Shown: positions 10,352-58,900 of the stretch, piece after piece
How positions within the stretch are numbered: the stretch's first letter is position 1
How the letters are laid out: every line of letters starts with the position of its first letter
Source of the DNA: Dendrobates tinctorius
Taxonomy: Eukaryota
NCBI RefSeq assembly: GCF_039654945.1
Contig: NW_027361714.1
Coordinates: 50,282,001-50,346,000 of the forward strand
DNA: 64,000 bases
Reading direction: 5' to 3'
The notes under the pieces: generated by a model
What the model was told of the DNA's origin: nothing
Database searches by the model: none
What the model saw: the letters and a program-made list of their open reading frames with translations, nothing else
Position numbers and translations under genes: made by a program

Positions 10352-10465
10352 ATGGCTGAGGAAGAGACCTAAGAAGTTCTGAAAGCTTGTTTTATAACAT
10401 CATATATTTTATGTTAGCCATTAAAAGGTATCATTCATAACTGCAAGACTAACTTGTTTTTCCCA
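10352..10465 (+). mobile_element. Penelope-type pseudo-LTR relic with decayed minimal hammerhead
   Basis: CTGAGGAAGAGACC...TTCTGAAAGCTTG followed by ATTAAA. Confidence 0.4.
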
Positions 10466-11451: not shown

Positions 11452-11703
11452 GGGCAGTATGGTGGCTCAGTGGTTAGCACTGCAGCCTTGTAGTGCTGGA
11501 GTCCTGGGTTCGAATCCCTCCAAGGACAACATCTCTAAGGAGTTTGTATGTTCTTCCCTGTGTTTGCGTGGGGTTCCTCCCACATTCCAAAGACATACTG
11601 ATAGGGAATTTAGATTGTGAGCCCCATTGGGGACAGTGATAATAATGTGTGTGAATTGTAAAGTGCTGTGGAATATGTTAGCGCTATATAAAGATTATTA
11701 TTA
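11452..11703 (+). mobile_element. tRNA-derived SINE inserted in an older antisense SINE (11375-11451 + 11704-11862)
   Basis: A-box TGGCTCAGTGG, B-box GGTTCGAATCC, GCGCTATATAAAG(ATT)n tail; flanks read as the reverse complement of the same SINE. Confidence 0.85.
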
Positions 11704-11869
11704 TATCAGAATGTTTTTGGAGTGTGGAGGAAACTGGAGTACCAAGAAAAAACTTACCAAACACGTGGAGAATATATAAACTCCTTGCAGATTTTGTCCT
11801 TGGTGAGATTTGAAACCAGTAGTGCAAGGCAAAATTGCTAACCACTCAGCCACCATGCTGCCTAGTCAG

Positions 11870-12150
11870 AGCTGCCAGGTATGAGCACTACACGCAGAAA
11901 TAAACATGCTTGCTATCAATTCAGTTATTAATGCTTGTCTGAAGGATGTTGTGCAATGCAGAATGCACTTGGGCACTAAAATCATCAAGATCATCTGCTG
12001 GCAGCTTCTTTTGTAATTGTTTACCAATGTGCTCAATATGAGAAACGTCTGGAGATTCTGCAAGCCATGCTAGCACATTTAGGCTATGCATGCTGGTCAT
12101 AGTAGTGGGCATCTTTAGGACGGAGACCTTAACAGGGCTACAACAAAGGA
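11870..12150 (-). pseudogene. Very degenerate Tc1 transposase C-terminal fragment
   Basis: LAWLAESPDVSHIEH resembles the Tc1 WPxxSPDLxPIE motif. Confidence 0.5.
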
Positions 12151-12322
12151 ATGTCATTTAGGTATTTAAATTTCAAGATGGAAAACATTGTCACATGTAA
12201 ATGTGTTTGATGATTCTCCTACAGATTTCCACACACTGTGCAGTTCTCTTTGATATTCCAGTACTTTGTAACCTGTAATAAGCATTTCACATCTTTGTTT
12301 TGTTGGTTGCATATTACTTTAA

Positions 12323-14860
12323 CCCCTTTCTGCCAGATGACGTACTATCCCATCCATGTGCCCAGAGACTTAATTCCCATGGATGGGATAGTACGTAAAC
12401 ACTGATCATACACGCTAACGGTGAGAGCACGGCTGATCGCGGCCGGGTGTCAGCTGATACTCACGGACCGCTCCCGGCACTTTAACCCTCTGAATGCTGC
12501 GATCAAACGTAATCGCAGCGTTCTGGGAGCAGGCAGAGGGTCTTGCTCCCCCCACTCCCTTACCCCACCAGCTGCTTCCAGCATTTTCTGGCATTATATA
12601 TCTTTATGCTGAATATCGTCTGGTCCCTATGCATCTACAGGGTTTATAAGCTTTCCTTTTTTTGGGTCAGGTATTGAACAATTGTGTGGGCTTTTTTTTG
12701 CCCTGTTAATTCTTTTTTGGCTCATATGGTGCTGTGAATAGCGGTTTTTTTACACCTCACATACACAGACCTTTTGGTCTATGTATGACTACACTATTTT
12801 ACATACATTGTTTGCGATATGTTGAGGTGGCTTGTTTGATATTTACCCAATGTCACTATTGCTATGTGGGGCTTTTCTGCTGTGGGAGTATCATCATATC
12901 ATTATTTCATGATTTGAGATGATTGCAATTTTCTTGCATCTTTTATTCTGTTTTTAATGTTTTTTGCTGTTTTGTGTATGTGTCAGGTATTGATGTATAA
13001 ATAAAATTTACCTTTTGTAGATTTTGTGGAGTTCCCATATGTAGATATATTGCTTTTCTCTTTTGTTCTTTGTATAATGTATTTTTGAATATATCTTTGG
13101 TGAACCCACTTTTGACTAATTTGGCTGTGCCCTTCGTCCATATATTATTGCAAAACGACGGATATAAATAAACATAATCTTGTCACGCAAAAAACAAGCC
13201 ACCACAGCGTCAGCAGTGAAGAAATAAAAATGGTATAGCTCTCAGAATAAAGCGATGCAAAAATAATTATTTTTTATATAAAATACTTTTTATTGTATAA
13301 AAGCACCAAAACATTAAAAAATGATAAAGTATAACTGAGGTATCACTGTAATCATGCTGACCCGAATAATAAAACTACCTTATCAATTTTGCCACACGTG
13401 GAATGGTGTAAACGCCCCCCCCAAAGAAATTCATGAATTGCTGGTTTTTGTTCATTCTGCCTCCTAAAAATCAGAATAAAATGCGATCAAAACATGTCAT
13501 GAGCCTGTACATGGCACCAATAAAAACGTCAACTTGTCTCGCAAAAAAGAAGACCTCACATGACTCTGTCGGCCAAAATATGGAAAATATATAGCTCTCA
13601 AAATGTAGTGATGCAAAAACTATTTTTTGCAATAAAAAACATCTTTTAGTCTGTGACAGCTGCCAAACATAAAAACCCGCTATAAATAATAAATCAAACC
13701 CCCTTTATCACCTCCTTAGTTAGGGAAAAATAATAAAATAAAAAAAGTATTTATTTCAATTTCCCTTTAGGGTTAGGGTTAAGGATGGGGCTGGGGTTAG
13801 GGTTGGGGTTAGCGTTGGGGCTAAAGTTAGGGTTAGGGTTGGCGCTAATGTTAGGGTTAGAGTTGGGATTAGGGTTGGGGTTGGAATTGGGGTTAGGGTT
13901 GGAATTAGGGATAGGGTTGTGATTAGGATTAGGGGTGTGTTAGAGTTAGGTTTGTGGTTAGGGTTATGGTTAGGGTTGGGATTAGGGTTAGGGGTGTGTT
14001 GGGGTTAGGGCTGGAGTTAGAATTGGGGGGATTCCACTGTTTAGGCACATCAGGGGCTCTCCAAATGCGACATGGCAGCTGATCTCAATTCCAACCAATT
14101 CTGCTTTGAAAAAGTCAAACGGCGCTCCTTTCCTTCCGAGCTCCGTCATGCGCCCAAACAGTGGTTTACCCCCACATATGGGGTATCAGCATGCTCAGAA
14201 CAAATTGCACAACAACTTTAGTGGTCCAATTTCTCCTGTTATCCTTGGTAAAATGAAACAAATTGGATCTGAAATAAATTTTTTGTGAAAAAAAGGTAAA
14301 TGTTCATTTTTTTAAGTTAATAAACTTCATGAATCTGGTTTTGAGCACCTTGAGGGGTGCAGTTTTTAGAATGGTGTCACTTTTGGGTATTTTCTATCAT
14401 ATAGACCCCTCAAAGTGACTTCAAATGTGATGTAGTCCCTAAAAAAATGATGTTGTAAAAATGAGAAATCGCTGGTCAATTTTTAACCCTTATAACTTCC
14501 TAACAAAAAAAAATTGGTTTCAAAATTGTGCAGATGTAAAGTAGACATGTGGGAAATGTTATTTATTAACTATTTTGTGTGATATATTTCTCTGTTTTAA
14601 GGGCATGAAAATTAAAATTGGAAAATTGCAAAATTTTCAAAATTTTGGCCAAATTTCCATTTTTTTCACAAATAAACACAAGTCATATCAAAGAAATTTT
14701 ACCCCTATCATAAAGTACAATATGTCACAAGAAAACAAAGTCAGAATCACCAGGATCCATGGAAGCGTTCCAGAGTTATTACCTCATAAATGGTCAGTGG
14801 TCAGAATTGTAAAAATTGGCCTGGTCATTAACAAGCAAACCACCCTTGGGGGTAAAGGGG
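12323..14860. mobile_element. Non-autonomous piggyBac-like element
   Basis: TTAA|CCCCTTT...AAAGGGG|TAAA (TTAA target, one mutated); no ORF. Confidence 0.75.
13767..14030 (+). repeat. Degenerate telomere-like (TTAGGG/TTGGGG)n tract inside the piggyBac-like element
   Basis: Direct reading. Confidence 0.85.
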
Positions 14861-15593: not shown

Positions 15594-17115
15594 GGGTTCA
15601 CCTTCCAACAAGACAATGACACTAAGCACACAGCTAAAATAACAAAGAAGTGGCTTCAGAACAACTCTGTGACCATTCTTGACTGGCCCAGCCAGAGCCC
15701 TGACCTAAACCCAATTGAGAATCTCTGGAGAGGCCTGAAAATGGCTGTCCACCAACGTTCACCATCCAACCTGACGGAATTGGAGAGGATCTGCAAGGAA
15801 GAATGGCAGAGGATCCCCAAATCCTGGTGTGAAAAACTTGTTGCATCATTCCCAAGCAGACTCATAGCTGTACTAGCTCAAAAGGGTGCTTCTAATTGTA
15901 AGAGTACGAGCAGGAACACAGGGTGCAGTGTCGGGACGCAGGCAGAGCAAGGGTTGACAGGTTTATTTACAGGAGAATACTTCATGGAGAGAGGTAAATA
16001 GTTAAACAGTCGGGGGATAAAGGGTTAGTCAGGGGAGACAAATGGTACATTAAAGGCAAGGGATATAACAACAGTTCAGATGACGGCAGTTCGTTAGCAT
16101 AGATGTAAGGCAGTCCTTATGCAGCTGCTGCTGCAAAGTCAATTGCGCCGCAACTGCTGGCGCGGTGTCCTCTATAGTGGGGTCAGTTAGATGACAACAC
16201 CCCATCTTCTGGTAACAGTGGTCGGTCTCTGGTACCTTCCACTGCCCCTTGTCCATATACTGCTGTGGCTATTAAAGGCACGGGTTATAGACCGGTACGA
16301 GCCCATCGTGGCCCCTTAACTGTCTTAACTGATGTAGTGAGGTCACAAAGGTCAGGACAACAATTCTGTGTCCATGTCAGGGTGCGAGTGTCAGTCCTAT
16401 GTGGTCTCTCTTACGCAGCGTGTCTGTGGTACTCATGGTCAAGTTGTGTACGGCACCTGGAGCCGATTAGCCTGGAAGCAACTCAGGAATCTCTCTATGC
16501 AGATAGGTTGTGTAGTCTCCTTCCTAGCGCTTACTTGAGGTACATGCAGTACTGTGTTACACTGATGTTCCTCCTTCTTCTTCCCTTTTGGATCTACCTC
16601 GTATGGCAGACAGCTGTAGCCTTCTATCTCCTTTGGCTCACACGTCGCTGTTGTGCCTCCGAGTCTTAGAAGGGAATAGAGCATTTACAGCTTCCTATTC
16701 CTCTGGTTTCTCTTGCAGGACCGTCAGTATCCATACAACCGTGGAGACCAGGCTCCAGATCATGCGCTCCAGCTGGGAACGAGCTCTCAACTCTGCTCAG
16801 TCCCCCAGCTTCTCTCTCCACGTCTACACACTTCGGCCTCCTCACAGAACTGACTAATTTCCCCTCCTCGCCCCCAGAGAGAAGCTCTTCCCCTTAGTAT
16901 TGGTTCAGAGCTCCCTCTGCTGGCCTGAAGTGGGAACTGTGTTGCATGTTATGGTTAACTGCTAGAGAGACCCCTTCATTGCTTCCAAGCCTGACATCAT
17001 CCTCCCTGGAGGAAGGCAATGCCACTGTGGCGACCATACTCCTGGGGGCGCCACAGCTGCAATGAAACAAAGAGTGAAAAATGTAAAGGGGTCTGAATAC
17101 TTTCCGCACCCACTG
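15594..17115 (+). mobile_element. Tc1 transposon 3' part: transposase fragment 15594-15893 and right TIR 17055-17115, interrupted by an LTR
   Basis: FQQDNDTKHT...WPSQSPDLNPIENLW (DD34E region); ends ...CCCACTG|TA. Confidence 0.9.
15897..17054 (-). mobile_element. LTR fragment (TGTGGCGCCCC family)
   Basis: End GGGGCGCCACA and internal similarity to 41825-43151 and 44348-45667. Confidence 0.65.
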
Positions 17116-37168: not shown

Positions 37169-37848
37169 TGTTTATTATATTTATATATATTTATATGTAA
37201 TTTTGTATTGCTGTGTTATTATATGTCTATTTTGTGTGCCTCTTTTTGCCATTTTGTTATTTTTTTCACATTTTTTTCACATTTTTTTCTTCCTTTTTTT
37301 TCTTTCACATCATGTGATTTAAATTTGATTTTATTGGGTGTAATGAGGTAATCTGTCACCACTTTTATGGCATAGCAGCTAAAAATATTGCCTTATTAAG
37401 TGTCTTCTATGCATTTCCTACATCATGATAGAACCCAATGACTCCCCTTGTATATTTGTAAACGAGTTTTAATGTGTCCCGCACTGTATGGTAATTTCTC
37501 AGTCCGGTCCGATGGGCTATGGGATATGGGATAGACAATGATGCTCTTTTTTTTCTCTAATAAAATGTGTGTGCTTTTGTGTATTAAAAATGCATTTTAA
37601 ATGCATAGAATATTACAGGCACTAATATGAACAAATTTTTGTTGGTAATGTGAATGATATAATAAGAACAATTTTTTCCAATGTTTTAAATACTAGTAAC
37701 GTGAACTCATAATGTATTAAAGTGTTAAACATAGGGAAAGTATAAGGGTCAGAAATTAGGACATAGGTATAGGATACAGTTCTAGATATAGATAAGGATT
37801 GGGAAAATACAGTGAAGGGCACAATAGAATCAGGAATTAGATAGTTAC

Positions 37849-39907
37849 TGTCACGGGTTTACTGCGACAGAGATGAGCCAGAAGACCACAGCATCTGATT
37901 TTTCCTACTGCTGCACAGATTAGAAGCACTTCACCTTCTTATCAAACAGTGTAAATTTCTTTTGCCAGTGCAGGGGTTAATCTGCTCTGTTGTGAGTTCC
38001 TGGAGTGTTTAGGCTCTCAACTGTTCACTGTTAGCCACTCCTATCTCCTATATAATCTGGGTGTAATGCAACTACAAGGCAGTTGCACGCAACCTCCACC
38101 AGGAGGCGCAGGTAAGGGGAAAAATGTAGCACTCACTGTATAGCACCAAAGTGCAGCAGCACGGGGAGCCACTTGGATGCGGCAGAGTAGTCAGACAGGC
38201 CGGTCAGCAACAAACAGGAAGACGAAGTACCAGAAGTCACAGCAATGCACGTGGTCAGGAATAAGCCAGAAATCATAACCAGACAGGAGCACGGTATCCA
38301 AAATGTGAGACAGAAGACGTAGTCGGGGTACAAGCCAGTGAATCAAAGCCAGTCGGGAAATGTAGTAACAAACACGGAAAGCAGGAGGTGGGGTTCAGAA
38401 TTCAAGCCGAGTCATACACAGTAAGGAAACCACCAAACACACACAAAGTCAGGGATAGGGAATGGGTCAGGCACAAATATGGCAAGTCAGAGGCAGAAGG
38501 ATTACTAGGGTATACGGGTCATCTGCTCAAGCCAGAGCCTAGAACTATAACTGACAAATGTTACCAGGAATGGCACCAATAAATAGCCATCCACAAACCA
38601 GTGAGAGGCAGTAAAAGTTAACCCCACCATAGGAAAGAAAAGCAAGAAGGAAACCTTGACCTGGATTATGACACTGGGCCCTGACTAGCACTCATTGTCA
38701 GAGTAGCTTATGCTGCATGGATGGAGATTGGTGGTGGTTATTATAGGAGAAGGCATTTGGTGGATTTATCTGTGACTGTTGTTAGATTTTGAGTATATGA
38801 TAATTCTCTTTCTTCTCCTACTTTGGTTTAACCCCATCCTCCACTCACCTGTGCATTCCTCTGTTATATGTGTAAGTATATTTGTATGTTTGGTATTTTT
38901 CGTTACCCTTGTTTCTACCTTGTTAGTCTGGTTGGGGTATTATGACACACTACTACTCCCTTCTTCACTGGGTGAGGCAAGGGTACAGACTGAGGGCGGA
39001 TTCAGGAGCTAAGGCAAGGTATGGGCCCAGGGAACAGGGCGAGCTAGGACACCCCTAGTGTTAGGGATAGGAAAGGAGTCCTTGTTTCTGGGACACCTGA
39101 CAACAGAGTTGTGACATTGGCTATGACCAAAACCGTTTTTTTGACTCATTACTGATCCTATCACTCCTCTGACAGAGCATGTTCTGACAGGGCAACTGCA
39201 GTAGCTCAGCCTGGAGGTGTCAGATCTATGCATTGTCATTTTGCTGCACCCTAACACATCAGGTTTGGGGATCATGAATCCTAGGCAATCCTTAGTGGAG
39301 CCCAAGATCGCTTTTTTGACAGGTTCTCTGGGGGGCGTGACTGACAAGTTTGTTGTTTTCAGGGAGGCCTTTAAACTATACTTCAGGTTACGTCCTTGTT
39401 CTTCAGGAACCGAGGAGCAACGGGTGGGGATAGTAATCTCGCTCTTTAAGGGTGACCCCCAAGCATGGGCATTCTCTCTTCCATCTCACTCCGAGTTGCT
39501 CCAGATGGCAGAGGAAATTTTTCCTGGCGATGGGTCATATATATACGACAACCCCAACTGTGTCTCCCTGGCTGAGTCCACACTACATCAGCTTCAGCAG
39601 GGATACTGGCCCCCGGTACATACCTCTGTTATATATGATTGTATATTTGTATGTTTGGTATTTTCCATTACCCCTTTTTGAATTATATTGCTAGTCACCA
39701 GACTAGTGGCTAGTGTATTTCATTACACTACTACTCCCCTCTTACCTGGGGGAAGAGTACAGACTGAGGGCAGATTCAGGAGGTAAGACACGGTATGTGG
39801 CCCCGGCATCTTCACCATCAGAAGTAGTCCAGGGAAAAGGGTGAGCTAGGGCTCCCCTAGCATTAGGGACAGGGATGGAGCCTCTGGACCCGAGAAACCC
39901 GGCAACA
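37849..39907 (+). mobile_element. Internally deleted Gypsy element (5' LTR 37849-39116, gag fragment ~39275-39605, partial 3' LTR)
   Basis: TSD GTTAC; gag motif FREAFKLYFRLRPCSSGTEEQRVGIVISLFKGDPQAWA. Confidence 0.8.
38062..38673. mobile_element. Solo LTR nested in a Gypsy LTR
   Basis: TGTAATG...TATGACA, TSD CTGGG. Confidence 0.8.
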
Positions 39908-40534
39908 GTTACAGTAAAGGAACAGTTAATGTGTTCGGAAATAGCTCCAATTTGAAAGGGGCATAGGTAATTAAAAAAGGGAAACACTTTCTGCTTTAGA
40001 TGAGAAGAGTAGATAGAAAGAGTGATATGTGAAAATCCAAGGTCAGAGTGCTAAAGAACACAAGAAAGTACAAATTTTTGGGCAGTATGTAGACGGCTGA
40101 CACTAACTTTAGCGGACCTTCTCAGGATGTCCGGGGGCCTATGGCATCAATTAGGTATAGAAGAGCAAGCCTAAATCACTTTCCAGTAGGGAAAGCCAGA
40201 TGAGGAAGTGTTTCAGGAGGGCAGGTCGGAACAAATGAAAGCTGTGGAGCCAGACAAAGTATTCCAGGGACCAGAGGTGCCACACCAGAAGGGAATAACT
40301 CAAGCTGAAAAAAGCAAATGTACAGTAATATCGTACTGTTATGGAGGTTGGACTGTTCAGTAAAGTTCTTTTGTTTGAAAAGGATCAAGTTTCTCCTGTT
40401 CAATGTGCCGCTGTTCCTGGATCCAAAATTGTGGAGACAGTGGAAGCTTCCAAACCATGAGTGTTATAATGAACACTCACAGCACAAGTGAAACGGGACA
40501 TAATGTTTGATTGTGGGGTGTTAGAGTGTGGGAA

Positions 40535-41359
40535 TGTAGGCAGAAAGACCGGACCGGGGGTACCTGCTTTGTGCCGGGTCCAGAACTGCCGGGGCTGTCT
40601 CCTCTGTTGTCTGGGGGAAAGTTTAAACAACCGGATCAACCTTTGCACTTAGCTTCAGGGGGGTGGCTAAGCGAGGGGAGCAGGAGCAGCGAGCGCGGCA
40701 ACAGGCTGTTCAGGTGGGAAAATGCAGCACGCAGCTGGAAAAAGGGAGAGCTCCTGCCTTGAAGCTTGGTAGCAGCGCAGGTCCGCGCCCGGCCATATTG
40801 ATCGCTCCCTGCAGTGACTCTGAGCAGAAGCTCCCCGTGTGCAGGTCAGCTACCACTCAGTCAAGTGCCAAACACTCCATAACAGTGAGTGCTGCGCGCG
40901 TGCCACCTAAGAGAGACTGTGAGTGTGACCGGGGACTGCTTCCTGAACCCCCGGTGTATATCTGTCTGGAGACGCTAGGCTCCGGCAGTGCTTTGAACTG
41001 TGCCCGACCCTCTGCACCGAACCCTGGACCAGGATACCCGCAAAATGCATCAGAGACTGATCTCTGCTGTCAGAACCCGACTCATCAATGTCTTCAGGAC
41101 TACACCTTCTCTGCATGCTGACCGTTGTTGGCACCATCTTCTACCCTGTGGGCATTTCAGCTTGGGAATCATCTGGACCAGATAAGTTACACCTTAAGAA
41201 AACTGTTACTATTCATGCTTACCCATGTTTTTACCAATTACCCGCCTTGCCCTCGTTTTACCCACTATCTCCCTGCGTGGAGTAAATATCTGTTAAGATT
41301 AAATACGTTAACCCTTGATCTGCCTCCTGTATGTCACTGCATCCCGCAACCTGCTCACA
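40535..41359 (+). mobile_element. Solo LTR (4-bp TSD family)
   Basis: TGTAGGC...GCTCACA, TSD GGAA; related to 8716-9829. Confidence 0.8.
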
Positions 41360-41824
41360 GGAACACAATAGTCCCTCGCCCATGACTAATGCCTTGTGCA
41401 CTTAACAACTTGGCGTAGTCAGCAGGAATTAGAGTACTTGCATGCATAAAGTGGAAAAACACCTGAAATGACCAAGATGTCAGCCGTTAGAAGTATTAAA
41501 ATGGCGAAAGCTGGCAAAAGCTCCACCCATCGTGAGCATCCTGAGAGAAAAACTAGGAAAAAAAATCCGTTTGGTACGAGCGGTGGCCGGCACCCAGGTT
41601 ACAGCCCCAGTGAGCAGTGCCGGCCCATGCTGGGCACAGCAAAAAAAGAAGAAACCCCGCCTGTTGATGCAGATCCCAGAAGAATGGGCATAGACTGAAA
41701 CTGAATGGGCAGAACAGCCAGAAGTGGCTCCACACAAGGAAGGGTGGACTCCGGAAGAGAGATTCCCTGTGCTCAGCAGCTCGGCGCCATTGCGGAAGAT
41801 GACACAGAAGAAGATGGATCATAC

Positions 41825-43151
41825 TGGAGCGCCCCACCAGGGCCTAGCGGGGTACTCGGTACAGGGCCCGTTGATCTCAATGGGAGTTGTCACGGAAGCT
41901 GTGACCCTGTCCGTGGCCCTGGGGCTCCATGGCAAAGAGGGGATGAATGAACAATGAAATGAAGTTTATGAACAGTTTGTGACGCCACCTGTGGTGTTCG
42001 GCAAGTGAGGTGTTAGGCCGACACTGCATGCAGATCCTCTGGGACTGGTGGTAGGTTTCAGCCAAGATGGTGAAGCTCCCCACAGGTGGAGCTGTAGTCC
42101 CAGGGCATAGTAGATGTAGCAATGGAGGAGAGGCACAGGTGGTGTAGAGGCCGGTGCCCAGATGTAGTATTGCGAGGTGTAGTGATGCGGGAATAAGTGG
42201 AGGACAACAGGGCATGTAGTTCCAAAGCTTTACTAACAGTCTGCAGTTCACACAGATGCCTGCCTCCATGCTGTGTCCTCCGGGTCCTGGGCTCAGTCAA
42301 CCTCCAGGCAAGATAGGATGCTCCCTTCCAACACTCCACCAACATGTACCTTTCTGAACATCTCCTCTATAGCGCCTTTAAGTAAAGTACTCCTAGTACT
42401 GAGTTACACTGGAGTGCCTCCTGACAGATGTTTGTTCCCAAGAACTCTACTTGTACGGCAGGCAGCTGTAGCCTGTTTTGGGGACTCCTTACTCCTGAGT
42501 CCCGGCTCACTATCCAAGTTGCTGTTGTGCCCCCAAGTCTTAGATGGGAGTAGTGCATTTACAGCCCACTACTCCACCGGTGTCTGCTGCAGGACCTTCA
42601 TTATCCATACAACCTCGGGGACCGGGCCCTGGCCTTGCGCTTAGAGCTTCTAGGCAGTGTTCTTCCTCTAACCCACGTCCTCTGTGTTCCCTTTTATTCC
42701 TTCGTTCCGTACTATTCCCTCTCTCTCATAGAAGGTCAGGTTTCAGTCTAATGTCTTTCTCCTTCTTTCCTTTCCTGTGCCAGCTGGCTGAGATCACTGA
42801 GGCAGCTGCAGCACTCCTTCCTCCATCCCTCTTCCAGGGATCCTCACTCCTCTCCGAGTGACTCTCTCTCTCATACTCACTGACTGACTGATTGACTGTT
42901 CCCGCTCTTTATGTATTCTAAACTCCACCCGCCTCCCAGCACGTTTTGTGTTCCAAGCAGGGAACCACCAAAGGTGCTCTGCTACTCTCTAAGCAAGGAG
43001 CTGCAATGTGGCTTTGCTGAACTACCATGTTGTGTGGGATGCGAGTGTTGGAGCGTGGTTAGGAGTTCCCACCTTACCTGGACGGTGGGGCACCACACCT
43101 CAGGAGGAGGTGCAGTACCTCTGTGGCGACTGAAGCCTCAGGGGTGCCACA
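41825..43151 (-). mobile_element. Solo LTR
   Basis: TGGAGCGCCCC...GGGGTGCCACA; TSD ATAC/AAAC; homologous to 44348-45667. Confidence 0.7.
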
Positions 43152-43574
43152 AAACCACATGGTTTTCCACAGTGATATCAGCCGCATGGAGTAGCAGCAG
43201 TGTATGGCGGAGGAACAGGAGCGGCCTGGAGGCCTCCAGGCAGCGGACGCCTCCGATGAAGATCCTGGAGAAAACTGCCTTCCCATACTGGTCAGAGTTA
43301 TAGCAGTGGCCAAAAGTGAGGAGAAAAGCTGATGTGACTGAACTATGCGACCGCAAAGAATATGCAGTCGAGATGCTTGAACCATGCAGGTGTGAAGCAA
43401 TTGCGGGCGTGACCACAAAGCCCCGAACGTGGACATTGAGATAGAGCGTTGGTGGCGAGTGCATTTCAGTCCCGTTTCCTCCCCAGGGAAAACCCTGTCC
43501 TATGTGGCATCCCTTAGTTCCCTGCACTGCATGAACGAGGAGGCGGGACCGATCCCAACCCCCAAGCAGGCAGA

Positions 43575-43860
43575 GTGGATAGCGGGGTAGTGGAGTAAAA
43601 GAAACGGTCGGAGAGAGAAGTCGGAGCAGAACTGCTGCGCCCGAGGGAAGAGCCATGGCTGGCCGGATGACTCGCTGCCTAATCCACCACTTCAACCCAA
43701 TTCGGGCTTACGGCTTCATCAGAGACAAAGAGACCAGCCATAAGGTCTATGTGAATGCTGGGTCGGTGAGGTTCCAATAGCCACAGCAGTAGAGAGACTG
43801 TTTATCCTTTATTAAGGAAGCTAGGCTCAGGGTATGCTAGGCGGTGGCAGCCACCATTAT
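43575..43860 (+). pseudogene. Cold-shock-domain protein relic of LTR element A (open segment 43655-43780)
   Basis: MAGRMTRCLIHHFNPIRAYGFIRDKETSHKVYVNAGSV: RNP1-like (AYGFI) and RNP2-like (VYVN) CSD motifs; missed by the ORF track because it is under 60 aa. Confidence 0.7.
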
Positions 43861-44347
43861 CTTGCCGGAAAACGACTCAGAGGTGGCCAAACGACGTGAG
43901 AGGCCTCTGTATCCCCAAGGCTGGAGTCATCAGGAGCAGCATCATGGCCGGAACAAGATGCTGTAGCAAAACTGCAGAAGTTGATATCCAATGGAGAAAG
44001 AATCAGGAAAGAGAGTGAGGCGTTGTCTTCTAGTGGATCATCCACTGGTCCCCACCTTTTTCTATTATGAAAACGGTGTTTACTAAGTACCCAGTGTTAT
44101 TTATATGCATTATTGCTTTTACTTATTTACTTACAGCAGGGTATTTGTTCATTTTGTTTCTGTCTTGGGTTTTGTCCACCTTTTTCTATGTACAGGGCCA
44201 TGGAGTGGCCAATTATGCTGGCCACACGGACATTCCGGAGTGAGTGCGGCTCCTTTCAATTTGAAGGCTCAAGTTTTTGTTTTGCTGGGAAAAAATAATG
44301 TGGGACTGTTCTGCGTCCCAGATGGCAAGCATCCCTGAATGTGCTAT

Positions 44348-45667
44348 TGGGTCGCCCTCCCAGGGCTGCGGGGTACTCGCTACCGGGCCGGAGTCAGGGG
44401 AATGTGTCACAGCAGCAGTGACCCGGTCCGTGGCCAAATCAATGGTGGTTTCTAGTTAATGAAATGGAATAGTTCGTGACGCCACCTGTGGTGTTGGGCA
44501 AGCAAGATGTTAAGCCAACGCTGCGTGCAGCTCCTCTGGGGCTGATGGTGTGCTGCAGCATAGATGGTGTAGCTCCCCACAGGTGAAGCTGTAACCCCAG
44601 GGCAGTGGAATTGCAATAGATGAGAATAGGCGCAGGCGGTGTTAGGAATGCTGGTACCCAGATGTAGCGGTGCTGATTGTGTTGGTGCACAAATGAATGG
44701 AAGACACCAGGGCTTGCAGTTCCAAAGCTTTACTCACAGTCCGTGGTACACACTGGTGCCTGCTTCCATGCCGTGTCCTCCGGGGCAGAGATTCAATCAA
44801 CCTCCCGGGCAAGTCAGGATTCTCCTCTCCAACACATCCGGTCAACATGTACCTTTCCTGAACGACTCCTCTATTGCGCCTTAAGGTGTGAAGAGCTCCA
44901 CTACCATGGTATTCTGGAGTTCCTCCTGTCAGATGTTCCTAACAACGCTACTCGTATGGCAGACAGCTGTAGCCTCTCTCGGGGACTCCCTTCTCCGGAG
45001 TCATGGCTCTCTATTCAGTTGCTGTTGTGCCCCAAGTCTTAGATGGGAGTAGTGCATTCACAGCCAACTACTCCACCGGTGTCTGCTGCAGAACCATAAG
45101 TGTCCATACAACCTCGGGGACCGGGCCCCGGCCTTGCGCTGAGAACCTATAGGCAGGGTTCCTCTTCCAACCCATGTCTCCTCTCTGTTCTCCTACTCCT
45201 TCGTTCCGCACTGTTCTTTCTCTCTCTTATGGAAGCTTAGGTTGCCATTCTACGTCGTTCTCCTTCTGTTCCTTTCCTGTGCCAGCTGGCTCAGATCACC
45301 GAGGCAGCTGCAGCACTCCTTCCTCCATCCCTTCTTCCAGGGATCCCCACTCCTCCCGAGTGGCTTCCTTCCTCACTGACCCTCTGTCAGACTGAACCCC
45401 CTCATTCTAAACCTTCCCAACCTTTTATATGGATCTCAACTCCACCCACCTCCCAGCACATCCAGTGTTCCCTGCAGGGAGCCACCAGAGGTGCTCTGCT
45501 ACTCTCTAAGCACTAAGCCACAATGTGGTTGTGCAGAACTACCCTGTTGTGTGGGGTGCGAGTGTTGGAGTGTGGAAAGGAGTTCCCAACTTACCTAGGT
45601 GGTGGGGCACTACACCTTAGGAGAAGGTGCAGTACCTCTGTGGCGACTGAGCCTCAGGGGTGCCACA
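44348..45667 (-). mobile_element. Solo LTR
   Basis: TGGGTCGCCC...GGGGTGCCACA, TSD CTAT. Confidence 0.8.
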
Positions 45668-47631
45668 CTATAGGATACCGATGCTGGCCAGTGCGGCCGA
45701 AGGTTCATTTGGTTTGAGTGCAAAGTTTGTGTTTCCCACATCCCAGTTCTTTAGCACATGTTGCACATCCCCCTGCTGGATAACATGACTAAGACCCTTA
45801 CAGGGTCAATCACCCTTTGTGACTGAAAAGGACTGTGTGTAACTGCCCTAAAGACTCTGTCCCATTATCCTATGAACTTTGCTTGTATGCAACCTTTAAC
45901 TTTTCCCCAGGGACTGATGGGCAGCAAACCTCTTTTTTAAAGGGATCATAATGTGCAAACAGGAAGAAGGGGGAAAACAGAACGGACAACCTGAGGATCA
46001 AGCCGGGTCAGGATTACATGAATTGAGCTCCTGGACTGTCAGAGCTGGAGTAAGTTGGCCAACGGGCCTGTTGTGTTTTCAACAGGACATGTGGTGTCAG
46101 GGTCCTTGGAGCAGTGGGACAGGAGTCATGCAGACCAGTGTTTAAAATGAACTTTGACACTTTGTGTCGGGGTCCCCATAGCAGTGACACCGGGGTCAAG
46201 TGGACCCATGTAACAATCGGATGATGAGTGTGCCAGGTGGAAGAGGAGAAGGATTGTGCTCATGTGTGTTTGGGCAATCATTTGTTTGGGCCAAAGGGCC
46301 GGTTTAAGAAAAGGACTCTTACAAACAGTGATAAATTTTATGCTATATGTTTTGAAGTATTCATATACAAATATTTGGATGTCATACAGTTACCGTATGG
46401 TCATGGACTACCATGTTTTAGGAGGGAGGAATGTAAGAATGTGTCAGGGACACTCATGCTCTTTTTCCTCTCTAATAAAACTGGTGTGCTTTTATGTATT
46501 AAAAATGTATTTTAAGTGCATAGAATGTTATGGGCACTAATGTGAGCAAATTTATGTTGGTAATATGAATGATATAATAAGAAAAATTTGATAGAATCTT
46601 TTAAAGTCTAACAATGTGAACTCATAATCTGTTAATGTATTAAACCTAAGGAAAGTATAAGGGCAAGAAATTAGGACATAGGTATAAAAATAGGATAAGG
46701 CGGTAGATAAGGATTCGGAAAATGCAATGGAGGGCAAAATAGAATCAGGAAGTAGATAGTTACAGTATAGGAACAGTTCAAGTGTTTGGGAACAGCCCCA
46801 ATTTGGGAGGGAAATAGGTAATCAAAAAGGGAAACACTTTCAGCCTTAGAGGAGATGAGAAGATTAGATAGAAAGAGTGATAAGTGAAAATTCAAGGCCA
46901 GATGACACAAGAGAGTTTAAACTTTTAGGCAGCATGTGGACGGCCGCCACTAACTTTAGCTGATCTTCCTGGGAAGTCCAGGGTCTACAGCACGAATTAG
47001 GTACAGAGGAGCATGCCTTAATCACTTTCCAGAAGGGAAAGACGGACGGAGAACTGTTTCAAGAGGGCTGATCGGAGCCCATGTAAGCTGTGGAGTATTC
47101 CAAGGGCTAGGGGTGCCAGACCAGAAAGGGATTACCTAAGCTGAAAAAAATGTAAATGTAACATCGTACTGTGCTGTGACTATGATGAATTGTTCAGTAA
47201 AGTTCATTTGCTTGAAAAGGATCAAGTGTCTCATGTTCAATGTGCAGCTGTTCTTGGATCCGGGATGTTGAGACAGAGGATGCTACTGACCAAACAGTGA
47301 GTGTTATAACGTACACCCACAGCACAAGGGAAATGGGACTCTGTTTGTTTGTTGGGTGCCAGGGTGTGGGAGCACAGCAGCCTCTTGCCCATGACTACCT
47401 CCAGGCTCGGACTGGCCCATAGGGTCACAGGGCAATCCCCCTATGGGCCCCTGTGCAGATTTGGGCCCCCAACCCCACTGTATAAAAAGTACTTGGCATA
47501 ATTCAATTGATTCTGTATAGAAAAAGGCAACATCTAATTATTCATTAATCAAACTACCCAGTTTATTATTATATAGAGATATAAATAAATTTGTAAACGA
47601 GGGTAGTGTGATATTTGTATGAAAGTGGGCC

Positions 47632-50016
47632 TGTAGGGAAGGTGACCTGACGGACGGACAGACTTGTCAGAATAGAGAAAGGAAGGTTTGCACAGTTTAG
47701 ACAGGTGTCAGTTATTACATTGGGGAAACAGCTAGGAAAGTGTAGTGGATGTGCAGTACCTTGGGTTGACCATTAGAGGACAAGGAGGAGTGTGAGCATA
47801 GCACTTGACATCAGCTTAGGGCTCAAGAAACCGCTGGTCATGGGGGGCGGAGGCAGAGGGAACCGGGAAAGGTATAAATTTGACAGGAGGGTTCCAGAAA
47901 GTTCCAGTCCCCAGGGGGAGCTCAAGTGACAGGAAGACTGCGACAGTTTGTGCACTGTGAGAAAAACCAAACCAGGGGGACTGAGGAGAGAGGAAGTCAG
48001 GGGGGTGGTCCTGACACAAGGTACTGCAATATAGATGAGGCACAGAGGTGAAGCATACCGAATTAAGGAAGACGACTGACCAGTAAAATTACTGTTGGTT
48101 TACGGGCCTAAGGCGGCCACAGTGACGGACCTGTCAGGAGCGTCAATAAGTGAAGAAGGGACGGTGCGTACATGTACGTCCCTGGTGTGAAAGTACGGTG
48201 TGCATAACGGGCCCTAGAAATGGAGGGCCGTGAAGTGAAGTGCGGTGTACTTCTGAGGCCGTCAGGCGGACGGCGAGTGAATAAACTTGGACCTGTTGTA
48301 CCCGACACTTGCCTCCATCGTGTCTCTGTTACGTCTCTGCGTGGTAAGAGAGGGACCACCCCCCAGTCCGGCCGACCAACCCTACACTTGGCGTAGTCGG
48401 CAGGATTGCCGCCGCTAATACGTCATCTTCTGCGGCAGGCCTGCCCCAAGGGATGGAAAAAGACTCAGACTGCTCTGTGTGGATTATAAGCACCAGTGGA
48501 ATACAAATCACCCACCTGTGGATTACAAATCGGGAACGCTGTGGAGGACCCACGTTGTTAACAGAGGATCCGGGGCGGTATCAGGTACTGTGCAGGATGG
48601 CGGTGTTACTTCAATGCAGAGGAGAGGTCCGGGTATTTACAGTTGTTCAGAATGGACTGGGACCCCCTCCAACGTACCCCAGGGGGAAGCGGTATGTACC
48701 TGCAGGCCGACGCTCCTATACACTGGATCCTGGCAGATGGGTGGAGAGGCCTGCCAACGCCCCACCAATCAGAGGGAGTGGCACAGAGGAAAAGCTTGGC
48801 TGCGGCTGCTTGGCGCCATTCGACTGCTGCCCAACGGACGGTATGAGACCCTGCGGGTGTCGAGGCATCAGGTGCCTGGAGTGGCAATAGCGGCGGGAGG
48901 TCGAGCTTCGCCAGAAAACATCCCCCTCAGAGCCACGGGCAGGCAACTGGATGTTGAGTGGAGAAGCGGAACCAGCGGGAGCAGCCACCGAAGTTACCAG
49001 CAGAGAGCCTCCCTGCGGAGCCCCTGAGCCTGGAGGCTAGCAGCGCCCGATGGCAGGGTGAAGAGCGGAGACTGCGGGAAGAGCCGCGTGATGACGTGAC
49101 GGAGGCCACAGTGCCGGGGAAGGTGAGAGTTCCCCTGGCCCCGACAGTGACTCCGCAAGCAGCTCCTACCATTCAGCCGCAGCACGTGGCACCCTGTGTT
49201 TCCAGGAGCCCGGCTAAGGAGGGCCCTACCATCTATGCAGAATTGAGCAGGGCCTCCGCTTCTGGTTCTGAACCGCTGCGCCCGGTGTCACCGGTGCGGA
49301 GTCTGACCAAAGAAGACGCCGTTGCGTCCTCTCTGTCACTAGTGGCCTCATCTTCAAAGTCGGCCGCTACCCCGGCTCCGACTGAAACTTTAGGTGCGGC
49401 CTGCACTGCGGCCGCGGTTATGCCGGTGCTGGAACCGACGGCGGCCTGTTTGACAGGCCCCGTGGCCCAATCCTCTGAGAACCCGGCTGCTCCCACCCGC
49501 CACCCGACCCCAGCGGATGCTGGGCCGCTGACATCATCGGCCACCTCTGCCCCGCTCCCTTCTTTGGCGGACTCCTGAGCTTGCAGTGTACCCTCCGTTT
49601 GGGTTGCGGAGGTTATCAAGAAGAAGAAGGCCCGGGAGCAGGAGATATGGAACCTGCTCCATGCAAAGGGAGAGGCTGGTATGGCGGCTACGAGATCTTT
49701 GCTGCGGCTCGTGTATGCGAACATCACCAAAGGATACGGATTCATACGGGATCTTGCGACTGGCCAGAAGGTTTATATAAACGTTACCTCTATTCATCAT
49801 GGCCGGGCTTTGCAGGAGGGGGATCTGGTATGCATAACGGGCCCTAGAAACGGAGGGCCATGAAGTGAAGTGCGGTGTACTTCTGAGGCCGTCAGGCGGA
49901 CGGCGAGTGAATAAACTTGGACCTGTTGTACCCGACACTTGCCTCCATCGTGTCTCTGTTACGTCTCTGCGCGGTAAGAGAGAGACCACCCCCCAGTCCG
50001 GCCCACCAACCCTACA
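47632..50016 (+). mobile_element. Younger LTR element B (tRNA-Ser PBS, cold-shock-domain ORF), internally deleted
   Basis: 5' LTR TGTAGGG...CCCTACA 47632-48386; PBS TGGCGTAGTCGGCAGGAT 48389-48406; near-identical 3' LTR remnant ~49827-50016; TSD GGCC/GGCT. Confidence 0.88.
48453..49829 (+). pseudogene. ORF of element B: Cys-rich N-terminus, Pro/Ala/Ser/Thr-rich linker, basic helix, C-terminal cold-shock domain (stops, one frameshift, 3' truncated)
   Basis: Frame of 48958 runs through one TGA (49576-49578) into WVAEVIKKKKAREQEIWNLL...NITKGYGFIRDLATGQKVYINVTSIHHGRALQEGDLV. Confidence 0.75.
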
Positions 50017-51745
50017 GGCTCCCAAAGTCAGTGTTACTGGAGGGCCCTTGGCACTGCAGCCCGACACTGACTACCGTCCTGCGCACCTTACATGACAACT
50101 ATGAAGAGTGTTGATGTCAGCAACGTTACTGTCGACGGGGCCGGATTTGGGGAACGTTGTAGGAATTGCTGGACTATGTCAGACCTGCGTGAGAACTTTT
50201 TTTCAATAAATTGGTGAATGAGGGACAGTGTTTTGTTTTTATTTCTCTCTTTTTATGTTTTTTTTAGGTTTCCATTTGTGGACTACTTTATATTTCCTGG
50301 ACTACGTCAGACCAGTATGCTTTTTTTTTTGTTAATACAGTCTTGAACCAGGGAATATGTGGGGGAGTCTTTTTTCTATTACTGGGTTAGTAATGAGGGT
50401 GTCTGATTGACACCTCTTCATTACTAACACCAGTGCTTGATGCCAGCTGTGATTTTTGACAAATCACAACTGATATCAACGCAGGCTACCATTACCCTGA
50501 TTGCCAACTCACCATGGCAATGGGGAAGAGCCGAGGCAAAGTGACAAAATTTATTCATGAATCGGTCTAGTTCAAGGAGAAAACAAAAATGTGCTGCTTG
50601 TTCCATGCCACAAAACATTTCAGTTATGATACAGCAGGTGGCAGTATTTTCCCATTTCTATATGCCATATAACTACTGCACTTACAAACAAGTCCTTGAA
50701 TTAGTCATACTAGTCACAAAAACAGCAGAATAGTTAACTGCCTGAGAAGAAAATCACAATTGTGGGATAACCAGCAGACCTAAACGTATACACACACTGT
50801 ATACACAGTGTTCACAGGCTTTTTTACTAGCTAATTGCCAATACAGTACCAGTACAATATACCAGTACAATATACTATCCTAAATATCCCATGTAATCAT
50901 TGCCTTTGATATAATCTCAGTATCTGGCACACCTTGACAAATGCCAATCATTGGCATCCTACAGCATTTGGGGTGAGCCCACCACAGTCTGGAACTAGCC
51001 CTGGATATATAAAATCAAATAAAAGGAAAAGTCCAAGAATCTGTATCCAGATGAGACCCATAGTCATTTACAGCTCTTGTTAATGACTATGGGATACATA
51101 AGGTTACAATTTACATTTCTTCAATATAATATTAATTTTCTAAACAGTGTTATAAAAATGCCGCATTCTTAGGTGTCTCAATGCGGTTTTCATTTTACAT
51201 GACACAGTGACTTGTATAATGTGTTAATTATATATTTCTTATTCTTTGCATGTATTTGTATGTGCAGAACCGGTTTTTCCTGAATTTCCTAAAATCAGGT
51301 GGAGCAAAGTGAACCTTCTTACAAGGAGTCGTCACAACAATAGTAATACACAAGTCATCACTGCTCATAGACACAAATTACCCGCAATGCTTTTACAATA
51401 TAGTAAAGGTATTTGCAACATGAAGATATAAAGAAGCCCATGTAATAGAGCTGTTAGAGGGCAAAATAAATGCTGTTTCAATAGACCAGAATTTTTTTTA
51501 TATAAATTTGATTTGGTCTTTACTTATTAGAAAATGTGGCCATACCACTAGGTATATGATAAATAAGATTCCACCAAATTCCACCAAACATATACATAGT
51601 CTCGCATCAGCGCCTTCCAATAGATTCCATGTGTAAGTAATTTAATTCTAAGTAAGTATTGAGTGATGTGATTTTTTTTTTCTATTTTAAATTAAAGAAG
51701 TGGCCTAGGAAGAACATTTTATTCTCAAATGTTGGAAATGAGTAA

Positions 51746-53117: not shown

Positions 53118-54065
53118 GTGCCCTGCACCGAAGTTGCATGCACCCCAAAAAGTATTTAAACCCACACACTGGATGGCCACAGGAAAACCAAGTTGACATT
53201 ATTCATTTGGTACTCCCATACTGTTTGCTTATGCATTGAATGCATTGCCTGCCCTGCACCAAAGTTAGACGCACCCCAATAAGCCTTTGAACACACGTAC
53301 TGGATGGCCACAGGAAAACCAAGTTGACATTATTCATTTGGTACTCCCATACTGTTTGCTTATGCATTGAATGCATTGCCTGCCCTGCACCAAAGTTACA
53401 CACACCCCAATAAGCCTTTGAACACACATACTGGATGACCACAGGAACACCCAGTTCACATTTTTCATTTGGTACTCCCATATTGTTTGCTTATACATTG
53501 AATGCATTGCCTGCCCTGCACCAAAGTTACATTCACCCCAATAAGCCTTTGAGCCCACATACTGGAGGGCAACATGAAAACAAAGTTCACATTATTCATT
53601 TGATACTCCCATACTGTTTGCTTATGCATTGAATGCAAGGCCTGCCCTGCACCAAAGTTATACGTACTCCAATAAGCCTTTGAACACACGTACTGGATGG
53701 CCACATGAAAACTAAGTTCACATTTTTCGTTTGGTGCTCCCATACTGTTTGCTTATGCACTGAATGCCAGGCCTGCCCTGCACCACAGTTACACGCACCC
53801 CAATAAGCCTTTGAACACTCGTACTGGATGACCACAGGAAAACCAAGGTCACATTTTTCATTTGGTACTCCCATATTGTTTGCTTATACATTGAATGCAA
53901 GGACTGCCCTGCACCAAAGTTACACGCACCCCAATAAGCCTTTGAACCCATGTACTGGATGGCCATATGAAAGCAAAGTTCCCACTGTTATGATTTTTTA
54001 AGTCACCTAAAGCTTGCACATGAAGTGAATACAAGGCCTGCCCAAACATTACACGCACTCCAATC
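53118..54065. repeat. 131-bp tandem array (~7 units), subterminal region of the large hAT
   Basis: ATTCATTTGGTACTCCCATACTG recurs at 131-bp spacing (e.g. 53201, 53332). Confidence 0.9.
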
Positions 54066-55922: not shown

Positions 55923-58900
55923 CTAGAATACGGGGTTCATTGATGTTCTGCAGCGACTCCCAATATCTCTCCTCGGGCCGAAGAAGAAAGTTCTCCCTCT
56001 GACCATCTTCATGGCTAACACATCTTTCACCTCAAAGACGTTCCCAGTGCTAACGGGTTGAGGAGTAGTACCGGATGACAAATGAAAGCGATTAAGAACC
56101 ACAGTTTTAAGCAGAGACACATGAAAGGTGTTGGGGATACGGAGCAAGGCAGGCAATTTTAAGCTGCAGGCAACATCGTTGATTCGCTCTAGGATCTCGA
56201 ATGGACCAATGTAACGTGGGCCCAACTTGTAGGATGGAGTCTTTAGTCTGATCTATTTTGAAGAGAGCCAAACTTTATCACCAGGAGTGTAAGGAGCAGA
56301 GTCCAGGCGCCTCTTGTCTGCATGCCTTTTCATCCTACCACAAGCTCTCAAGCGCTCCCTTGGTGTCTTTCCAAATCTTAGAGAATTCTATGGACAGAGA
56401 GTCGGCTGCAGGTACCCCCGAAATCGAAGAGACTGGAAGAGGCATACCTGGATGTTGCCTAGAGATGATGAAGAAGGGAGACTTGGTAAAAGACCCATTG
56501 GAGTGATTATTGTAAGCAAATTCTGCCCAAGGAAGCAAACCGACCCAATCATCTAGATGAGCGTTAGAAAAATGCCAAAGATAAGAAGCAAAGACCTGAT
56601 TGGTTCGCTCCACTTGACCATTGGTCTGAGGGTGATAAGCCGAGGAGAAATCCAAGGTTACATTCTTAAGCTTGCAGAGAGCTCTCCAGAAGCGGGAAGG
56701 GAATTGGATCCCCCTATCGGACATGATGTCCCGGGGGAATCCATGGAGTCTGAAGATGTGACTAATGAAAATCTTCACCAACCCAGTAGTGGAAGGCAAG
56801 CCAGGCAAAGGAACAAAGTGAGCCATTTTAGAGAAACGATCCACGACCACTAGAATAGCAGTACAGCCGGAGGAATACGGTAGGTAGGTAATAAAGTTCA
56901 TCGCAATATGTTGCCAGGGAGCTGATGGAACAGGAAGGGGACACAGAGGGCCAGAGGGTAATCATCTAGGGATCTTGTTACTGGCGCAGGATGGACACGA
57001 GGCGACAATATCTTTGATGTCTTGACGCAGAGTAGGCCACCAATAGTAGCGAGCGATGAAGAGAAGCGTCTTCTTTATCCCGGCATGACTGGATGAGTGT
57101 CCCCAAAGTAACACCCTCCTCCTGTTGTCCTCTGCCACGAATGTTTACCTGTGAGAAAATGGAAACGTTCTTAGGAGCGTCTGAGTCTCTTTCCTGCGCT
57201 CCTAAGACCGTTTCCATTTTCTCATTGCTCCTATCCTCCATTGGAGGTTTTCGGCTGGAGCTGCAGTGGAGACCTGACATTTTTGTCTGCCCCTGGGTTT
57301 CTTCCTAAGCGCTCCTCTATGACCGCTTATCACTGACTCTTATACGAATGTTTACCTGGCAGAGGAGTAGCTAGACTTAAGGGAGCCACAGTGATGAACT
57401 TAGAGGGGTCAATAATGTGTGATGGTTCCTCCTCCATATCGGAAGGCTACAAAGATCTAGACAGCGCATCCGCCTTGACATTCTTGTCGCCTGGCCGGAA
57501 GTGAAGTTCAAAGTCAAAACGGGCAAAGAATGGCGACCACCTTGCCTTCCGGGGGTTCAGCCTTTCTGCGGATTGGATATAAGTCAGATTCTTATGATTG
57601 GTGAAAATTATAAACAGATGTACGGCTCCTTCGAGTAGATATCGCCACTCCTCCAGAGCCAATTTTATGGCCAATAGCTCACGGTCTCCAATAGAATAAT
57701 TGCGCTCCAATGTAGAAAACACCTTGGAGAAAAAGCCACAGGTGACTAACCGACCAGCAGAGGACCTTTGGGAAAGCACAGCACTGACTCCCGTGGAAGA
57801 AGCATCCACCTCGAGAATGAATGCTCTGCTAGCCTCTGGACGATGTAGCACAGGAGCTGTAGCGAAGAATTGCTTCAAGGTTAGCAAAGCATTCTCAGCC
57901 TCTGGAGTCCATGCATTAGGACTAGCTCCTTTTCGGATAAGAGATGAGATAGGCTTGGTCAAGGAGGAAAAATGAGGAATGAACTGCCTATAATAGTTGG
58001 CCAAACCAAGGAACCGTTGGATGGTTCTTACACCGAGAGGTCACGGCTAATTGAGGATGGCGGACACCTTCTCAGGATTCATCTTTAAGCCAGAGTCAGA
58101 GATAATATACCCCAGAAAGGGTAAGGAGGTTTGTTCAAAATACACTTCTCCATCTTGGCATATAGGCGATTCTACCACAGACGCTGCTCTGGAGGAAAGT
58201 TGAGGATGTAATCCTGGTACACCACAACACAGGAATATAAGAGATCCCCGAAGATATCATTAACAAATTCCTGAAATACCGCAGGAGTATTGCAGAGGCC
58301 GAAAGGCATAATCAAATATTCATAGTGTCTGTCCCACGTGTTGAAGGTGGTCTTCCACTCATCTCCGGAGCAAATGCGAATCAGGTTGTAAGGGCCAAGA
58401 AGATCAAGTTTAGTGAAGATCCAGGACCCTCTTAAACAATAAAAGAGCTCCAGGATAAGTGGTAGAGAGGGTACTTGTTCTTGATTGTAATGTCGTTCAG
58501 ACCTCTGTAGTCTATACAGGGATGAAGAGAGCCGTCTTTCTTTTTGACAAAGAAAAATCCCATGCCCGCAGGAGAGGAAGATTTCTGAATAAACCCCTTG
58601 GCTGGATTCTCCTGGATATATTCAGACATGGCCGGGGTCTCAGCAGGGGCCAGCGGATAGATCCTACCCCTAGTGGGAGTGGAACCCAGAATATGTTCAA
58701 TCGGGCAGTCATATGGCCGATGCGGAGGAAGATTCTCAGCCTCCTTCTTGTTAAAGACATCCACAAATGACCAATAGGTGGAAGGTAGCCTAGCAGAAGC
58801 AGAAGAAGGCCATGAAGAATTAACTGGATGAACAGGAGAGTAGGCTCATGCGCCCTAAGCCAGGGCAGACCAAGAAGATGTGCGTTAGAGAGATTATGTA

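Follow-up and report, generated by a model that had tools for sequence, protein, structure and literature searches.

A decayed cold-shock-domain LTR retroelement in Dendrobates tinctorius, probably a second lineage of a non-autonomous frog family

The window analyzed here, a stretch of 64 kb from the genome of the poison frog Dendrobates tinctorius, harbors the long terminal repeat (LTR) retroelements A and B, the first of which is the subject of this study. Element A (~37.5-47.4 kb) is probably an ancient, dead, non-autonomous LTR retroelement primed by tRNA-Ser, representing a second and deeply diverged lineage of the frog family to which B and a complete element at the locus L001 belong. 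Its sole recognizable gene, as read from the conceptual translation, encodes a basic helix and, after it, a terminal cold-shock domain (CSD). The same order of a tryptophan, a basic helix and a CSD is found at the end of the open reading frame (ORF) of B and of the 431-aa protein P0001 encoded at L001. A first-pass annotation of this DNA had regarded a second, highly divergent CSD-bearing LTR element as the sign of a family instead of a one-off capture, a view which is supported by the homologous helix-CSD module of A. The features on which this comparison rests are:

43576-43652 (+): remnant of the Trp and basic helix, upstream of the CSD; the frame shifts twice and meets one TAA; aligns collinearly with B and with residues 329-355 of P0001
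43655-43864 (+): cold-shock domain remnant; a single frame runs through it, broken by stops at 43778, 43790 and 43838; matched by BLASTP, tblastn and profile searches
47632-50016 (+): element B, with 5' LTR at 47632-48386, primer-binding site (PBS) at 48389-48405, helix and CSD at 49579-49863 and a 3' LTR remnant at 49827-50016

The helix and cold-shock domain module of element A

The module of A is preserved as a decayed reading frame at 43576-43864 (+), interrupted by two frameshifts and four stops and translated by reading through with an X at each break. It opens with W-I-A-G at 43576-43587, switches frame between 43587 and 43593 and meets a TAA at 43596-43598, followed by a basic, helix-like stretch from 43599 to ~43652 and a second frame switch ahead of the ATG at 43655. 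From this position onward, 41 open codons (43655-43777) make up the CSD remnant with the motifs F-N...Y-G-F-I-R-D...K-V-Y-V-N, before stops appear in the same frame at 43778, 43790 and 43838. Extended through these stops in a single frame, A remains collinear with the C-terminal half of the P0001 CSD up to ~43864, a half which is missing in B. The letters had been read correctly in the first-pass annotation (W-I-A-G, basic helix, CSD motifs), and the collinearity proposed there was recovered as well, the frame of A running parallel to the basic-helix and CSD end of B (49579-49863) and to the intact P0001.

Comparison of the A stretch with the corresponding piece of B (49579-49860) by BLASTP gave 46% identity over 35 residues at a pairwise E of 1e-8. 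In a tblastn search over the whole window the A/B match was obtained at E 1.5e-5 to 5e-5, and a third copy of the module was not found in these 64 kb. A profile built from P0001 and B was searched against 2,672 six-frame fragments of the window, among which A was the sole further match (E 1.5e-5, next best 3.6). The A/B alignment is significant by both tblastn and profile, and like B and L001, A closes its ORF with a homologous module of Trp, basic helix and CSD, across which its amino-acid identity to either of them is 35-39%. On DNA level, sensitive settings revealed 63% identity between 43704-43850 and the CSD of L001 (E 8e-9). Consequently, the earlier statement that A and B lack obvious DNA similarity holds for the LTRs and the rest of the interior but is slightly overstated with regard to the domain itself.

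Kinship to cold-shock proteins

Profile comparisons show that the predicted module is kin to cold-shock and Y-box domains. A phmmer search of the B piece against 1.84 billion proteins identified P0001 as the closest relative (69% identity, E 1.4e-26), together with 15 further proteins of the same library at E ≤ 0.001; nine of these 15 were scanned and all nine carry three to six Pfam CSDs. A three-row profile of the family, compared with the PDB, matched 36 chains at E ≤ 10, nearly all of them named cold-shock or Y-box proteins, the best being CspB (9.8e-5) and YB-1 (0.002), with bacterial Csp and YB-1 ranking equally. By hhalign, a probability of 97% was reached against 65 CSDs, the templates being drawn from the phmmer matches of the B piece. 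Within the window, a generic CSD profile detected B at E 6.5e-10 and A at E 0.0021, the next best match lying at 1.7. Homology to known CSD proteins is thereby significant on profile level. Word-index protein searches with the B piece, the whole P0001 and P0001 320-431 returned nothing beyond P0001 itself, and the ESM Atlas gave no usable match for the B piece or the N-terminal 110 residues of P0001.

The characteristic motifs are preserved to different degrees. B has the complete RNP1 (K-G-Y-G-F-I), A a part of it (R-A-Y-G-F-I) and P0001 a degenerate form (R-E-Y-G-L-I), while RNP2 reads V-Y-V/I-N, lacking the His, in all three. Considering that A retains the canonical F-N before its RNP1-like motif and B the K-G-Y-G-F-I, the common ancestor of A and B was nearer to a canonical CSD. 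With respect to established cold-shock proteins (CspA/CspB, YB-1/YBX2; PF00313), the likeness consists of the PDB matches of the family profile and of RNP1-like and RNP2-like motifs at the right spacing in A and B. The family differs in scores under the Pfam cut-off, in an RNP2 without His and in a domain that ends a 431-aa protein encoded between LTRs, with no host paralogue identified as its source.

Architecture of element A

Alignment of 37534-37848 plus 39907-40533 with 46449-47371 yielded 84% identity over 903 aligned bases, establishing that the two direct LTRs of A, initially only putative, are homologous to each other. Both priming signals that had been annotated in A were found, a PBS for tRNA-Ser at 41411 (16/17 matches) adjoining the 5' LTR and a polypurine tract (PPT) at 46420, AGGAGGGAGGAA, adjoining the 3' LTR. 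The PBS of A (one mismatch) and that of B (48389-48405, no mismatch) are the only two matches in the window, where 0.06 would be expected by chance. LTR-pair identity amounts to 84% in A versus 97% in both B and L001, which makes A far older. The annotated span of ~37518-50092 was upheld in respect to the homologous LTR pair, but its 3' end at 50092, which would place B inside A, was not: the resemblance of 50053-50092 is not significant (sole seed E 8.7) and A can be traced to ~47400 only. As a copy of TGACTACC occurs at both 47391 and 50060, the entire block 47399-50059 may conceivably have been inserted. Rfam returned nothing in 36-51 kb and ARAGORN no tRNA gene. The parts of A outside the module are, in order:

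37523-37848 (+): 5' LTR, first part; 82% identical to 46449-46766; start approximate, firm similarity from 37534
37849-39899 (+, end approximate): later insertion in the 5' LTR with TG...CA ends; GTTAC flanks on both sides; the 3' LTR is uninterrupted here
39907-40533 (+): 5' LTR, second part; 77.5% identical to 46758-47371
40534-41359 (+): block of 826 nt present in the 5' LTR only; no counterpart after 47371, the block having been gained at this site or lost from the 3' LTR
41360-41407 (+): tail of the 5' LTR, ending ...AACA; similarity resumes, 41360-41388 matching 47369-47397
41411-41427 (+): PBS complementary to the tRNA-Ser 3' end; 16/17 matches
41428-41824 (+): interior piece 1; short open stretches, no family match
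41825-43151 (+): nested solo LTR of a third family, TGG...ACA; flanks ATAC / AAAC; very high-copy in related genomes
44056-44179 (+): small high-copy repeat in the interior; in three other genomes its depth is in the thousands, with loose ends at 44070 and 44176
44348-45667 (+): second nested solo LTR of the third family, TGG...ACA; 78% identical to 41822-43151; flanks CTAT / CTAT
45668-46419 (+): interior piece 3; multi-copy in related genomes
46420-46431 (+): polypurine tract, directly before the TG opening the 3' LTR
46432-47402 (+): 3' LTR as far as traceable; 84% identity over 903 aligned bases with the 5' LTR
50053-50092 (+): possible displaced tail of the 3' LTR; ~70% identical to 41375-41407, not significant

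The two 1.3-kb inserts of the interior were confirmed at exactly the annotated coordinates (41825-43151 and 44348-45667) and are regarded as separate solo LTRs because each possesses its own 4-bp target duplication. After their removal the interior of A measures ~2.34 kb, in comparison to 2.37 kb in L001, in agreement with the ~2.4 kb without visible gag/pol noted before. The stop-to-stop stretches scanned against Pfam numbered 20, of which 17 came from both strands of the interior, two from the region of the 5' LTR and the last from the first solo LTR. None of them matched a retroviral family at E ≤ 1; gag, protease, reverse transcriptase, RNase H and integrase all went undetected between PBS and PPT, an absence that the decay of A leaves unproven. 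The search for reverse transcriptase or integrase remnants, proposed as a check on A, gave no signal on this basis, and the organization corresponds to that of a non-autonomous LTR element.

In another species, 41407-41551 and 45672-45863 are found on one contig of 1,757 nt, separated by 1,375 nt; ~1,340-1,460 nt would be expected for the interior of A without the solo LTRs and the small repeat, versus ~270 nt if the 1.3-kb repeats bounded a nested element. The CSD segment is covered at single-copy depth by contigs of two related species with 97% and 89% identity. Reading these contigs as the orthologous locus, A would predate those species splits.

Several insertions in A are of interest in their own right. 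The insert at 37849-39899 contains an internal direct repeat (38848-39031 / 39613-39806) and parts of it resemble 8382-10178 on the opposite strand. In related frog genomes the third-family solo LTR is hugely abundant, the summed contig depth reaching up to 5e5, and a further fragment of it lies at 16641-16768. The repeat at 44056-44179 measures ~110-120 nt, is immediately preceded by a poly-T run where it occurs elsewhere and may be a fragment of a short interspersed element (SINE) or a miniature inverted-repeat transposable element (MITE).

Element B and the complete element at L001

P0001 is a 431-aa "uncharacterized protein" of D. tinctorius encoded at L001:6001-7296. In the locus L001:1-13296, this ORF and the element around it fall inside the extent of a gene model with a SLAIN domain. 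L001 represents a complete element, starting with a 5' LTR at 5029-5803 (TGTAGGG...CCCTACA), a tRNA-Ser PBS and one intact 431-aa ORF, and continuing 3' of the ORF with ~0.9 kb of interior, a PPT and a 3' LTR with an internal deletion; the element is flanked by TCTG on both sides. Given that this intact copy has an interior of 2.37 kb with a single 431-aa ORF, the enzyme-less layout is native to the family, which lends support to the natively non-autonomous architecture that had been suggested for A. For the published frog annotation this means that the gene model of P0001 should be flagged as element-borne.

B shares 78% identity with L001 over 2.2 kb. This comparison explains the odd 3' end of B, where the end of the CSD, the ~0.9 kb of interior behind it and all but 190 nt of the 3' LTR have been lost to a deletion.

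In the N-terminal part of P0001, residues 24-27 form a P-P-T-Y (PPxY-like) motif, behind which lies a patch rich in Cys (C-G-C ... C-C ... C-G-C). B (window 48597-48887) has retained the motif as well as the patch, this part being 80% identical to that of P0001 with a dN/dS of 0.30. PPxY is a late-budding motif of many retroviral Gag proteins, and the PPxY-like motif hints that the N-terminus of the family protein may be derived from Gag. Downstream of the L001 element, G+C-rich tandem repeat arrays with units of 11/18 nt and 21 nt extend over 10154-13132.

Divergence and selection

Between B and L001, the ratio of non-synonymous to synonymous substitutions (dN/dS) amounts to 0.30 for the N-terminal part of the protein, 0.48 for its middle and 0.28 across helix plus CSD. 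These values of 0.28-0.48 indicate that the protein was under purifying selection while the family spread. Toward A, identity at the first, second and third codon positions amounts to 0.45, 0.57 and 0.35 for B and to 0.53, 0.66 and 0.43 for L001. The ratio of the corresponding proportions of differences (pN/pS), A versus B or L001, is 0.48-0.55 with a saturated pS of 0.71-0.90; the protein-guided alignment biases this ratio downward by lowering pN somewhat, and the neutral decay of A since its insertion raises pN. Past purifying selection on the module at protein level is supported by this pattern, with codon-position identity in the order second, first, third and a pN/pS of ~0.5. The long-term selection that had been postulated from protein conservation is in line with the dN/dS of the B/L001 pair, the pN/pS of A and the saturation of synonymous sites.

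Outside the module, neither the LTRs nor the interiors of A and B show similarity. A 13-mer shared upstream of both was taken as a chance match in AT-rich DNA, the alignment showing no wider similarity.

Evaluation of the family assignment and of alternative explanations

A number of observations weigh against the assignment of A to the family of B and L001. The LTRs of A and B, as had already been noticed, are unrelated (blastn, no match at E ≤ 1), residues 1-320 of P0001 have no collinear tblastn match in A, and the 3' interior is not shared either; related LTRs and a related N-terminal protein part, typical of the B and L001 type, are absent from A at this level of comparison. No target-site duplication of 4-6 bp was found for A with either candidate 3' end (~47402 or 50092), its 3' end being unclear, although the missing duplication is weak evidence in view of an LTR divergence of ~16%. 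For the domain, CSD (PF00313) is the top Pfam family of both pieces (B 17.8 bits, E 0.003; A 13.8 bits, E 0.053), but both stay below the Pfam gathering cut-off of 27 bits, and P0001 is without any Pfam match at E ≤ 0.01. The mean pLDDT of AlphaFold models is 52.8 for the B piece alone and 41.1 for P0001 326-431 with the three-row alignment; these low-confidence models place strands where beta1-beta4 are expected and are too poor for a fold search. The alignment bias in pN/pS described above belongs to the same side of the balance. At ≥80% likeness, the CSD segment is single-copy in related genomes and the PBS- and PPT-proximal flanks (41428-41740 and 45790-46430) are multi-copy, so that other A-type copies may lack the CSD segment or have diverged further. 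Moreover, no RNA run was listed as holding A or B, which is not evidence of silence.

Part of these observations would be accommodated if A and B were unrelated tRNA-Ser-primed LTR elements and the module had moved by template switching between co-packaged RNAs or had come from a shared source. Only the helix-CSD module is common to both, LTRs, upstream coding region and 3' interior being dissimilar, and for this reason descent from one ancestor is not fully separable from an exchange of the module. We nevertheless consider such an exchange unlikely, as the module is found at a comparable place in both elements, the interiors are nearly equal in length (2.34 versus 2.37 kb) and the divergence of the module itself (35-39% identity, saturated synonymous sites) fits non-coding parts that have drifted beyond recognition.

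The remaining explanations concern the origin of the CSD stretch itself. The 1.3-kb direct repeats (41825-43151, 44348-45667) belong to the same family, share orientation and 78% identity and lie 1.2 kb apart around the CSD, which would suit the LTRs of a further element (C) nested in A and carrying the domain. However, each repeat has its own flanks (CTAT/CTAT; ATAC/AAAC), the outer flanks ATAC and CTAT differ, neither a PBS after the first repeat nor a PPT directly before the second is present, and only 424 nt are available upstream of the helix. Together with the gap of 1,375 nt in the contig of the other species, where ~270 nt would be expected, this makes a nested carrier very improbable, and the repeats were dismissed as its LTR pair on the grounds of target duplications, absent PBS/PPT and the foreign contig. 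The short and broken nature of the stretch, along with an upstream coding part of A that has no recognizable relatives, could also point to a host gene fragment or processed pseudogene inside an unrelated LTR element. We give little credence to this origin, since nothing closely related to it, among 1.84 billion proteins or in the window, was found other than on elements (P0001 between the LTRs of L001, and B), no vertebrate host protein matched more closely, and neither a poly(A) tail nor a flanking duplication surrounds the stretch. A chance resemblance, implying no homology and no CSD at all, might be argued from a core match of 35 residues and from frameshifts repaired by eye. It is hardly conceivable in respect to a window-wide E of 1.5e-5 with the next match at 3.6, the collinear extension in a single frame through the rest of the domain and the detection of the stretch by two independent CSD profiles. 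The preferred reading consequently remains that of A as an old lineage of the B and L001 family.

Relation to known elements and proposed function

Non-autonomous LTR retrotransposons relying on an autonomous partner include LARDs, TRIMs and gag-only elements such as BARE2 of barley, all of which possess LTRs, PBS and PPT but no reverse transcriptase or integrase. LARDs and TRIMs are not known to carry a conserved protein, and BARE2 retains a true Gag. Element A resembles them in having LTRs, PBS and PPT without a reverse transcriptase or integrase signal, whereas the product of the A/B family ends in a CSD, and no capsid or zinc-knuckle signal was found in it by Pfam. RNA chaperones encoded by elements are exemplified by LINE-1 ORF1p and the retroviral nucleocapsid, which employ an RRM plus a C-terminal domain or zinc knuckles, respectively. 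A similar chaperone role on its own RNA may be proposed for the protein of the frog family, with the difference that its fold would be the OB-fold of a CSD. The closest counterparts of A are B and L001, which have in common with it the tRNA-Ser PBS, the PPT, an interior of 2.3-2.4 kb, the Trp/basic-helix/CSD module and the lack of pol; they differ in LTRs unrelated to those of A and in the N-terminal 320 residues of P0001, which are unrecognizable in A. In full-text literature searches no description of an LTR element equipped with a cold-shock-domain gene came up, nor is one mentioned in the D. tinctorius genome paper; the family seems to be undescribed in the searched literature.

With regard to propagation, the reverse transcriptase and integrase that copied A would have been supplied in trans, by an autonomous retrovirus-like element using the same primer. 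The protein of the element may bind its own RNA via the CSD, serving as a chaperone or as a packaging adaptor in place of nucleocapsid or Gag. A more far-reaching scenario, which we put forward tentatively and hold to be doubtful, is that of a long-lived group of parasitic poison-frog LTR elements in which Gag has been replaced by a CSD-based protein ferrying the RNA into particles of a helper retrovirus. Two or more lineages whose LTRs are unrelated would have retained this protein under selection, over a divergence that saturates synonymous sites, and in the B lineage it has a conserved N-terminal PPxY-like motif.

The usual picture of non-autonomous LTR elements is that of empty shells (LARD, TRIM) or of trimmed copies of their helpers. 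A family that maintains its own CSD protein under selection, here in two lineages with LTRs that have ceased to be alike, departs from this picture. If the proposed role holds true, the protein would be an RNA-binding factor encoded by a retroelement, with a fold that has not been connected with LTR elements to date. The family would thereby offer a tractable case to study how the parasite of a parasite secures a place in the particles of its helper.

Further observations in the window

At 56707-56802 (-) the translation resembles a retroviral-type integrase core (...H-G-F-P-R-D-I-M-S-D-R-G), and based on this stretch an autonomous element may lie near 56-57 kb; no tRNA-Ser PBS was found near 56-57 kb. 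Positions 53119-53989 are occupied by seven tandem copies of a 131-nt unit that are 79-92% identical.
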